Source: Fonticula alba ATCC 38817
Taxonomy: Eukaryota > Protista > Nucleariida
DNA length: 23,888 bases
Reading direction: 5' to 3' (one strand)
Assembly: GCA_000388065.2 (NCBI GenBank)
Contig: KB932209.1
The notes beneath the pieces are model-generated. The model saw nothing but the letters and a program-made list of their open reading frames with translations, was not told the origin of the DNA and searched no databases. This document shows, one piece after another, positions 1,322-21,007 of the stretch (positions within the stretch are counted from its first letter, which is position 1; each line of letters opens with the position of its first letter). Both the position numbers and the translations under genes were made by a program.

Positions 1322-2596
1322 TCAGGGGGAGTCACCGCCAAAGAGGCTGGTCCAGATGAACCCGACAACCGAGGAGATGGCCGAAACCATGGCGCCAAGA
1401 ATGCCCTCCTCGGCCGGCGGGGCAGCCGGGGCCGAGGTATCCGGCACCAGCAGGGCGCCGGAGGGCTTGCCGTCGGTGGGCTTGCCGTCGGCGGGCTTGC
1501 CGTCGGCGGGCTGGGCAGCCACCGGAGCCGGGAAGACCTCCATGGCCGGCTGCGGCGGGCAGTCCGACATCGAGGCCTGGCCCTCCTCCAGGCCGGGGGT
1601 CGAGGTTGCCGCCGGAGTGGCCGAGGCAGGGGGCGCAGGCTCGACGGCCGGCTGCTTCGGGGTATCGGCCACCACGGGCTTCGGCGGGGCGGCCGCGGCA
1701 GCCACCGGCTCCGGGGCAGGGGCGGCAGCCGGAGTGGCAATGACAGTCGGCTCTGGCGGGGGCGTCACCACCGCAGCCGGCGCCGCGGGGGACTCCGCCA
1801 CGGCGGGCTCCGGGACGACGGCCATGCTGAGCGGCCGGGGAGCGGCCACCGGCAAGACCTCCGTATTGGACGGCCCAAACTGGGAGATGTCCGTTGGAGC
1901 GAGAACCATCATGGACTGGGCACGACGGCCGGTCGGTCGAACGGCCGCCTTCCTCCGCAGGGCGCTATTGTCCAGGGAGGAGGTCTGGGCAAAGGAGGTC
2001 AGGACCAGGCAGACGGGCGGCCAGACCCGGGGAAACCGAGGGGTCAGCCCGGAGAGGAAAGCAGAGCGGGCGATTGCGAGGTGGAGGGGGGGGGGGAGGC
2101 GGGGGGGGGATGGTCGATCGTGGGGTGGCAGTCACGGACATACCTTGGGGGGAGCATCAAAGGTCACGGTGCGCAAGGTGGTCGGGGTCGGCAGACGCTC
2201 GGCCTCCGGTGAGGGAGGGAACTCCGAGTCCGGAGACTTGGGATACGGCTTGGCGCCAGGGACACCCAGGGGGAACTACGAAAAAGGGAGGTCAGAGGAG
2301 CCGGAGGAAGTGGCGCGCAAAGCATGAGAGAGAGAGCGCGCGCGCGCGCGGCGGAAAAGGAGAGACCGAGGAGAAAGAACGCACGCTGATCTTGGCCGCA
2401 AGTTTGGCGATGTTGGCGCTGACTTTGACATTGGAGGCAGTGCCGTCGGGATTAAGGTGTGGCGAGCTCTGTGGGCGTCGAGCAAAAAAAGGAAAACACG
2501 AGAGGCAAGAGGAGCGGGGCGGAAGCCGGAAAATGGGTTAATAGCCGGAGGGACGTCAATGGGTGGCCACACAGGCACCTGCGGTGAACCTACCAT
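1322..2596 (-). CDS. Gene A: 293-aa Pro/Ala-rich, largely disordered protein with a CPI-like motif and a hydrophobic C-terminal helix (hypothetical)
   Basis: Exons 2596-2594 (ATG), 2468-2385 (SSPHLNPDG...SANIAKLAAKIS), 2275-2144 (FPLGVPGAKPY...FDAPPK), 1984-1322 (TSSLDNSALRRKAAVRPTGRRAQSMMVL...GFIWTSLFGGDSP*). Donors GTAGGT, GTGCGT, GTATGT; acceptors CAG, TAG, CAG with TTAAC/CTGAC branch motifs. All introns are phase 0 (125, 109, 159 nt) and the total of 882 nt is in frame. Confidence 0.72.
1463..1507 (-). repeat. 15-nt coding tandem repeat x3 encoding (A/T)DGKP
   Basis: gggcttgccgtcggt/c three times on +; protein ADGKPADGKPTDGKP. Confidence 0.85.
2326..2350. repeat. Compound (GA)n(CG)n microsatellite in gene A intron 2
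   Basis: gagagagagagcgcgcgcgcgcgcg. Confidence 0.8.
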
Positions 2597-2706
2597 AGTG
2601 GATGGGGGTCGAGGGGGCGGGCAGCGTCCGTCGGGAAACGCGCAGCGGTGGCGGCGGAACAGCGAAAAGGCGAGGAGAGGAGCAGGACAGCAGGGGCAGG
2701 TCGGGC

Positions 2707-19800: not shown

Positions 19801-21007
19801 GGTTGGCGAAGCCGGAAGCCGTAGCCGGGGCGGCCATCTTCGGCATCGGCATCGGGGCCGCACTGCTTGACGCGCCGCCCGTGAAGAGGTCCGGCCGGGT
19901 GGCCTGCGCGGGGCGCTCCTTCTCCGACCGGAAGTACACCATCCACGAACCGGCCGGCGCGCGGCCGGCAATGTCCGCAAAGGTGGGAGCCGCCGAGACC
20001 GAGGAGGAAAGCTTCTCCTCCTTGCCGGAGGGATCCACCGCATAGAGGGAGAACTTGGCGCCGCGCTTGGCCTCGGCCTCGAGTTCCAGCTTCTCAATCA
20101 TGGACTTGATGGTATCCTGGATGGTATCGGTCGAGGAGGGGACCACCGACTTGTAGCCCGACGCACAGTAGATACGCAGCGGCATGGTGGGAGCGCGGCG
20201 CCGGGGAGCCGCGGCGCGGCCGCGGGCAACCGACTTCAGCGGCTGGAACTGGGGAGCAGGAGATTGCCCCCGGGGGGGGGGGGGCCGACATGCATCAGAC
20301 ATCGGAACGGGATGGCAGGCGGGGGAAGGCGCGAAAGGGGCAATGGTGATTGCAAGAGGAGCGGAGGGGGGGGGGGGGGATACCTCGCCGGAGGCAGCCG
20401 GAGGGGTTGCAGTGCTCGGAGCGGCGGCAGGGACCGTGGTCGCCGGCCGGGGGGAACCCATCCCGGGGGGCGGGCCGCCGAAGCCGGGAGGCGGGCCACC
20501 AAAGCCAGGGGGCGGGCTCCCAAATCCGGAGGATGATCCGCCAGTGGATTGCTCATCGGCCGCGTCTCCGGACGAGGAGGCGGCTGGGGTAGGCCGGCGT
20601 GCCGAGGGAGGGGGGCCCATCGGCACCTTTGTCGGTGGCGATGATTGTGGAAACCGCGCGAGGGGAGACATGAGCGGAGGGCGGGGGGGGGAGGGGGGGG
20701 GGCGGTGAGTTACCAAAGGCAGACAGTCGCAGGGGTGGCGGGATGTCGGGAACGTGACGCACTTGGATGTTGGCCGCGAGTGCGGCGATCTTCGAGCCCT
20801 GTGAGCGTGGCGGCTAAGACCACGGGGGGGGGGGGGGGGGGGGGGGGGGGGGGGGGGGGGGGGGGGGGGGGGGGGGGGGGGGGGGGGGGGGGGGGGGGGG
20901 GGGGGGGGGGGGGCGACGTGGGAGGAGAGGGACCGAGGGAAAGACACAGGTTAGCCAGCCAAACGCGGACAGCAGGGGAGGAGGCGCGGGCTGTGAAGAC
21001 GCACCAT
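16802..21007 (-). CDS. Gene C: about 1166-aa multidomain protein with a CPI-like motif, Ras-association (RA) domain, Pro-rich linker, PH-like region and degenerate sphingosine/ceramide-kinase (DAGK-family) domain
   Basis: Exons 21007-21005 (ATG; in-frame TGA 15 nt upstream), 20798-20763 (GSKIAALAANIQ; alternative in-frame TAG acceptor at 20814), 20626-20384, 20248-19119, 18890-16802 (3501 nt). RA-like LRIYCASGYKSVVPSSTDTIQDTIKSMIEKL...FSLYAVDPSGKEEKL. SphK-like segments VLVFIDP, IIVISDSISLAHNVVNGFASRPD (cf. LVVMSGDGLMHEVVNGLMERPD), VTAARFEP...IVIDYQ...HLALHPGLLRVF (cf. VVAFRLEP...FAVDGE...QGQVHP). Confidence 0.8.
18144..18197 (-). repeat. 6-nt coding repeat (GGTGC[T/G])n encoding a Gly-Ala tract in gene C
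   Basis: gcacc[a/c] units on +; protein AGAGAGAGAGAGAGAA. Confidence 0.8.
19916..20185 (-). other. Ras-association/ubiquitin-like domain within gene C
   Basis: About 90-aa ordered island between Pro-rich linkers matching the RA pattern LRIY...YKSV...T..D.I...EKL.L......FSLY.V...G.E..L. Confidence 0.65.
20824..20913. repeat. G90 homopolymer (sense C90) in gene C intron 1
   Basis: Pure G run of 90 nt as assembled. Confidence 0.85.

Follow-up and report, generated by a model that had tools for sequence, protein, structure and literature searches.

Two genes of the holomycotan amoeba Fonticula alba ATCC 38817, termed here gene A (H696_05101) and gene C, lie on the minus strand of a 23,888-nucleotide stretch of contig KB932209.1 (termed here the window; GC content 68%) and begin with leaders that are built in the same way. 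In each gene a first exon consisting of the start codon only is followed by an Ala-rich, helix-like motif (IAxLAAxI), by a Pro-rich exon that opens with xP[LM]G, and by an Arg-rich motif that ends in RRAx[ST]M; the leaders are disordered, and their exon junctions are in phase 0. An earlier reading of the DNA alone (termed here the original prediction) took these leaders to be a shuffled module that recruits actin capping protein to different effectors. Here the transcripts, the similarity between the leaders, and their resemblance to known capping-protein ligands are examined.

Organization of the two genes

Genes A and C are spaced roughly 15 to 18 kb apart on the same strand. Assembly gaps fall between them (14312-15293 and 16175-16235) and upstream of the 5' untranslated region (5'UTR) of gene C (21302-21522); because no gap interrupts either transcript, only the distance between the genes, originally given as 15 kb, is approximate.

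The structure of gene A was established from RNA contigs assembled from four runs (two samples), which show three junctions (2594|2468, 2385|2275 and 2144|1984), all with GT..AG ends and all as originally predicted; two further runs from a second organism (X12 and X13, organism B) are without real coverage of the gene A/C locus. Exon 1 (2594-2596) holds the start codon, and the verified 5'UTR, which reaches at least 2667, contains no upstream ATG. Exon 2 (2385-2468) encodes 28 residues, the last nine codons of which (2385-2411) specify IAKLAAKIS; exon 3 (2144-2275) encodes 44 Pro-rich residues beginning with FPLG; and exon 4 (1322-1984) encodes 220 residues plus the stop codon, remaining open to the stop at 1322 within an RNA contig that is unbroken from 1984 to about 1064. 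The basic motif of gene A (L77-M98; 1910-1975) lies near the start of exon 4. The spliced protein (M / 28 / 44 / 220 residues, 293 in all) is 100% identical to the annotated H696_05101.

For gene C, the RNA agrees with the predicted start-codon-only exon and with the second and third junctions (20763|20626 and 20384|20248), but not with the predicted exon 2 acceptor at 20798, which is unused. Instead, a contig covering 21005-21144 joins exon 1 (21005-21007) to an acceptor (..cttag|CCG) at 20813, 15 nt further upstream, thereby adding five in-frame codons (PPRSQ) before GSKIAALAANIQ, so that the 1,171-residue protein starts MPPRSQGSKIAALAANIQ. Exon 2 (20763-20813) accordingly reads PPRSQGSKIAALAANIQ, of which 20763-20789 encode IAALAANIQ. 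The 5'UTR extends to 21144 and, like that of gene A, lacks an upstream ATG. Exon 3 (20384-20626) encodes 81 residues that begin with VPMG and include three GFGxPPPG repeats. The basic motif, LKSVARGRAAAPRRRAPTM (20183-20239), lies close to the beginning of exon 4 and is followed directly by a region resembling a Ras-association (RA) fold; the motif is predicted to be disordered and has no Pfam match. N-myristoylation of gene C, which an initial MGSK... would have permitted, is ruled out, as the transcript encodes MPPRSQGSK....

The leading introns, three per gene, are phase 0 in all six cases, and the layout, phases and motifs of the original prediction hold up in the RNA and the sequence; the start of gene C exon 2 does not, and the similarity of the leaders, when not anchored at the introns, falls short of significance.

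Similarity between the two leaders

A six-frame translation of the window (47,772 residues) contains exactly two copies each of IAxLAAxI and RRAx[ST]M, all of them in genes A and C. Among the 12 possible pairings of an intron of gene A with an intron of gene C, the two collinear ones, second with second and third with third, have the highest BLOSUM62 sums (41 and 6, respectively), and the others reach at most 3. Of the 14 residues around intron 2, 8 are identical (p ~ 6e-5, from 3 million random pairs of 14-mers drawn from window proteins), and the 25 residues downstream of intron 3 give p ~ 0.007, both flank windows having been chosen after seeing the data. At the nucleotide level, the best BLASTN match between the 5' regions consists of the IAxLAAxI codons and the adjoining donor site (28/36, E=8e-4). 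The donor GTGCGT, which had been regarded as a distinctive shared mark, was discarded as such: it is found in 4 of the 7 introns of the two genes and is simply frequent.

These comparisons suggest, as the likeliest reading and one towards which we lean with some reserve, that the leaders are diverged local copies of a single block of 5' exons. Such an arrangement would resemble phase 0-0 exon shuffling or partial local gene duplication, in that small exons bounded by phase-0 introns stand in the same order before unrelated downstream domains. It differs from clear cases in how little the two copies have in common, about 15 residues and none of the intron sequence, which makes the duplication itself an inference and not something visible.

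Resemblance of gene A to DUF4592

The second half of the gene A leader resembles DUF4592 (Pfam PF15262), the signature domain of the animal protein CRACD/KIAA1211. The profile has 124 positions and a gathering cut-off of 27 bits. The whole spliced protein scores 20.4 bits (E=7.4e-4), with residues 50-97 aligned to profile positions 75-123; residues 40-110 alone score 24.3 bits (E=4.5e-5). The first half of the matching stretch (residues 50-73; 2144-2215) is the end of exon 3, and the second half, TSSLDNSALRRKAAVRPTGRRAQS (residues 74-97; 1913-1984), is the start of exon 4; because the match straddles the junction, exon 4 by itself gave none. As a control for composition, about 4,750 residues of real and spurious open reading frames from the window were searched in the same way, and yielded no false Pfam match, only the genuine ELP3.

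A direct comparison points the same way. A 58-residue CRACD fragment, validated by Pfam as the C-terminal end of DUF4592 (83.4 bits, profile positions 71-124), aligns by composition-corrected BLASTP with gene A residues 62-94 (15/34 identities, 44%; E=1e-5), the matched segment being TLRTVTFDAPP-KTSSLDNSALRRKAAVRPTGRR, around LDNSA..K.AV.P. Gene A and CRACD thus share VxFDAxP and LDNSA..K.AV[KR]P...R, in disordered, basic surroundings in both. They differ in that only the last 40% or so of the domain is matched, at a score under the cut-off, and in that CRACD is an animal protein of about 1,200 residues whereas gene A encodes a 293-residue tail-anchored orphan of a holomycotan amoeba. The N-terminal helix motif of either leader has no match to the N-terminal part of DUF4592, and the CRACD helix upstream of DUF4592 has no BLAST similarity to either leader. 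The CRACD/KIAA1211-type variant named in the original prediction is retained for gene A, as a likeness of sub-threshold score, and dropped for gene C.

A separate observation concerns gene C residues 378-401 (about 19046-19117, minus strand), STPSRRFNTATIDSVALATVAILV, which resemble the middle of the C-terminal part of DUF4592 (40% over 25 residues, E=0.018 without composition correction) and are followed by VDN..H..VRP. This stretch was found by neither Pfam nor a local profile, and its likeness to DUF4592 is probably due to chance.

Common origin, coincidence and other explanations

Several findings weigh against a common origin of the leaders and against a CRACD-type peptide in gene A. When the leaders are compared without anchoring, BLASTP reports a single, non-significant 17-residue match (IAxLAAxI..P.G, E=0.41), and Smith-Waterman alignment does not exceed shuffled sequences (p=0.24, or 0.017 if gaps are made cheap). 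The intron sequences of the two genes have no BLASTN similarity beyond the donor site. The anchored flank windows were selected post hoc. The DUF4592 match of gene A is confined to the final 49 positions of the profile and scores under its 27-bit cut-off; the LDNSA...[KR]P stretch within it is no more than a candidate for the capping-protein-binding site of CRACD. Gene C residues 1-59 and 73-125, exon 3 and exon 4 have no PF15262 match at E<=10, and a hidden Markov model (HMM) built from gene A and the CRACD fragment scores -0.5 bits on the gene C region (p=0.35 against shuffles). Finally, no homologue of either gene turned up elsewhere, which rules out an argument from conservation.

The most serious alternative is coincidence: in a genome of 68% GC, low-complexity N-termini rich in Ala, Pro and Arg, combined with introns concentrated at the 5' ends of genes, could produce a resemblance that is noticed only after the fact. 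The failed unanchored comparisons, the commonness of the GTGCGT donor, the unrelated introns and the dissimilarity of the second motif of gene C to DUF4592 all fit this explanation; moreover, over all intron pairs in all windows of a genome scan, an anchored match with p ~ 6e-5 would be expected several times. It is harder to reconcile with two consecutive, collinear intron pairs that both have raised flank similarity (joint p ~ 4e-7 before correction), or with an ATG-only first exon in both genes together with six phase-0 introns. We regard coincidence as a substantial possibility, if not the one we would choose.

A second alternative concerns the function of the Arg-rich motif and is compatible with a common origin of the leaders. 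Basophilic kinases favour Arg at positions -3 and -4 and a hydrophobic residue at +1. RRAQSM in gene A and RRRAPTM in gene C might accordingly be sites for an AGC- or CAMK-type kinase that would regulate the leader, rather than a dock for capping protein. Relative to the candidate acceptor residue (S97 in gene A, T120 in gene C), both have Met in position +1 and Arg in positions -4 and -3, and gene C also has Arg at -5 and Pro at +2, so that its site might possibly serve as a 14-3-3 site (RxxpTxP) as well. The core pattern is not specific, however, as RRAx[ST] occurs 10 times in the six frames of the window, and we consider this explanation rather unlikely.

The original prediction itself, in which each leader is a capping-protein-interacting (CPI) module that exon shuffling joined to a different effector, and both belong to a lineage-wide family, fares worst. 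The canonical CPI consensus is LxHxTxxRPK(x)6P (PMC5491179); such motifs tolerate divergence (PMC6249002), and a Fonticula CARMIL with gelsolin domains has been mentioned (PMC10881157). The best windows in both genes match only 3 of the 7 consensus positions (gene A, LRRKAAVRPTGRRAQSM; gene C, LKSVARGRAAAPRRRAP) and do so in different registers. A match of 3/7 or better is found in 428 of about 37,000 stop-free six-frame 17-mers of the window (~1.1%), including several per leader; both genes being at background level, membership in the canonical class is not supported. In the register aligned with CRACD, LRRKAAVRPT of gene A lies over CPI positions 1-10 and keeps L1, R8 and P9, which is suggestive but amounts to the same background-level 3/7. 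Neither gene has a CAP-ZIP_m, CARMIL_C or Aim21 match in Pfam at E<=10. In PDB sequence searches, the basic motif of either gene and residues 55-110 of gene A matched no chain at E<=10 and, with that, no solved CPI peptide; the CRACD fragment likewise matched nothing there.

What the leaders have in common with known CPI-motif proteins (CARMIL, CD2AP/CIN85, CapZIP, FAM21, CKIP-1 and the twinfilin tail, and the fungal Aim21 and Bsp1) is a short, basic linear motif embedded in disorder, in proteins that are not otherwise related; gene A moreover keeps three of the consensus residues, L1, R8 and P9. What sets them apart is the absence of H3, T5, K10 and P17 and a match that does not rise above background. 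As to a wider family, phmmer, run exhaustively with gene A on 1.84 billion proteins, recovered the query and nothing else, the Fonticula proteome not having been searched with a weak-motif profile. The exon-bounded layout and the DUF4592 likeness of gene A survive from the earlier interpretation; the canonical consensus, the role assigned to gene C and the wider family do not. The resemblance of gene A to the CRACD domain, its retained L1, R8 and P9 and the tolerance of CPI motifs for divergence speak for the module-and-family proposal, and the missing DUF4592 signal in gene C speaks against it; on balance it is improbable.

Downstream regions of the two proteins

The remainder of gene A is rich in Pro and Ala (19% and 18% of the whole protein), disordered (mean confidence, pLDDT, of the Atlas model 0.40) and ends in a hydrophobic segment, residues 267-289 (1337-1405), where the best Kyte-Doolittle 19-mer (1.74) starts at residue 267. 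As this 23-residue segment stops four residues short of the stop codon, it is a likely tail anchor, and gene A is likely a tail-anchored, elsewhere disordered, orphan protein. A word-indexed homologue search with exon 4 likewise found only H696_05101. Look-alikes of gene A in the Atlas, among them Aim21 and CAP-ZIP clusters, were set aside, because their scores (<=0.64; TM 0.22) lie below the stated noise level of the tool.

Gene C continues, after its basic motif, with a predicted ubiquitin-like (RA-like) beta-alpha-beta unit, a Pro-rich linker and a beta-rich, PH-like region, all within exon 4 (19119-20248), and ends in exon 5 (16802-18890; 695 residues plus stop), a region like a diverged DAGK/sphingosine kinase. 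The domain assignments are leads: Atlas features of exon 4 point to RA and PH families (scores 0.73-0.78, leads only), those of exon 5 weakly to DAGK_cat (near 0.6), and an AlphaFold2 (AF2) model of exon 4 made without an alignment (mean pLDDT 47.7) contains a ubiquitin-like unit, disorder and a beta-rich region, which is compatible with an RA-PH arrangement. Gene C, exons 4 and 5 included, has no Pfam match. It resembles the RA-PH adaptors (Grb7/10/14 and the MRL proteins RIAM and lamellipodin) in its Pro-rich stretches, its predicted ubiquitin-like unit and beta-rich PH-like region, and its RA/PH Atlas clusters; it differs from them by this lack of a Pfam match, by the low confidence of its AF2 model and by a C-terminal, diverged lipid-kinase-like region that those adaptors do not have.

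The fourth intron of gene C (19118-18891) is removed in the RNA and is in phase 2. Being 228 nt long, a multiple of three, and free of in-frame stops, it would, if retained, insert 76 CT-rich codons in frame. Of the two samples, one (X2) has a T>G difference in its RNA contig at 16906, near the stop codon. Neither the whole of gene C nor its RA region, used as queries, matched anything in a collection of 5.8 billion proteins, not even an annotated Fonticula protein; the gene is transcribed and spliced, yet without a matching annotated protein, and the public assembly may lack its annotation or model it wrongly.

Other features of the window

Between genes A and C lie two annotated genes. The Elongator subunit ELP3 (674 residues, radical SAM and ELP3_N domains) occupies 4361-7097 on the plus strand, opposite to its neighbours, between gene A and a 1,710-residue gene that extends on the minus strand from 7592 to beyond 12596; the 841-residue terminal exon of the latter has no Pfam domain. 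The window also contains 17 homopolymeric C/G runs of at least 15 nt, at which the RNA contigs break; among such tracts are those of 164 and 54 nt directly upstream of the gene A 5'UTR (2743-2961) and one of 90 nt within gene C intron 1 (20824-20913).

Conclusions

Taken together, the observations are tentatively explained by leaders of common origin, of which that of gene A carries a CRACD-like docking peptide and that of gene C is a degenerate or repurposed copy; we give this combined interpretation nearly, but not quite, an even chance. It would begin with the local copying of one block of 5' exons, followed by divergence until only about 15 shared residues were left. In gene A, the end of the Pro-rich exon and the basic motif would together make up a strongly diverged copy of the DUF4592 C-terminus. 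With its tail anchor, gene A would then most plausibly be a protein held at a membrane, with a CRACD-like docking peptide exposed on the cytosolic side. Binding and inhibition of CAPZA/CAPZB by CRACD, through 'capping-protein-interacting motifs', have been reported (PMC13631292). The candidate partner of gene A would be the ligand of DUF4592, which may be capping protein. Gene C, which keeps the helix motif and the Arg-rich stretch, would then hold a copy that either has degenerated or has been put to another use, such as a basophilic-kinase site.

A bolder extension of this interpretation would make the CRACD-type peptide an ancient opisthokont capping-protein docking motif, preserved in Fonticula as an exon-bounded cassette on at least two genes, one of them tail-anchored to a membrane and the other joined to Ras-association and lipid-kinase-like domains; this we consider a long shot.

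What stands at present is a modest lead, below threshold, in two genes specific to this lineage; it does not amount to the demonstration of a family of actin regulators. If the leaders do share an origin, they would provide a clean, transcript-verified, small case of the reuse of a phase-0 exon block in a holomycotan amoeba. If the gene A peptide is truly of the CRACD type, gene A would offer a minimal, membrane-anchored protein of 293 residues with which to probe the uncharacterised binding of DUF4592, and the motif itself would predate animals.

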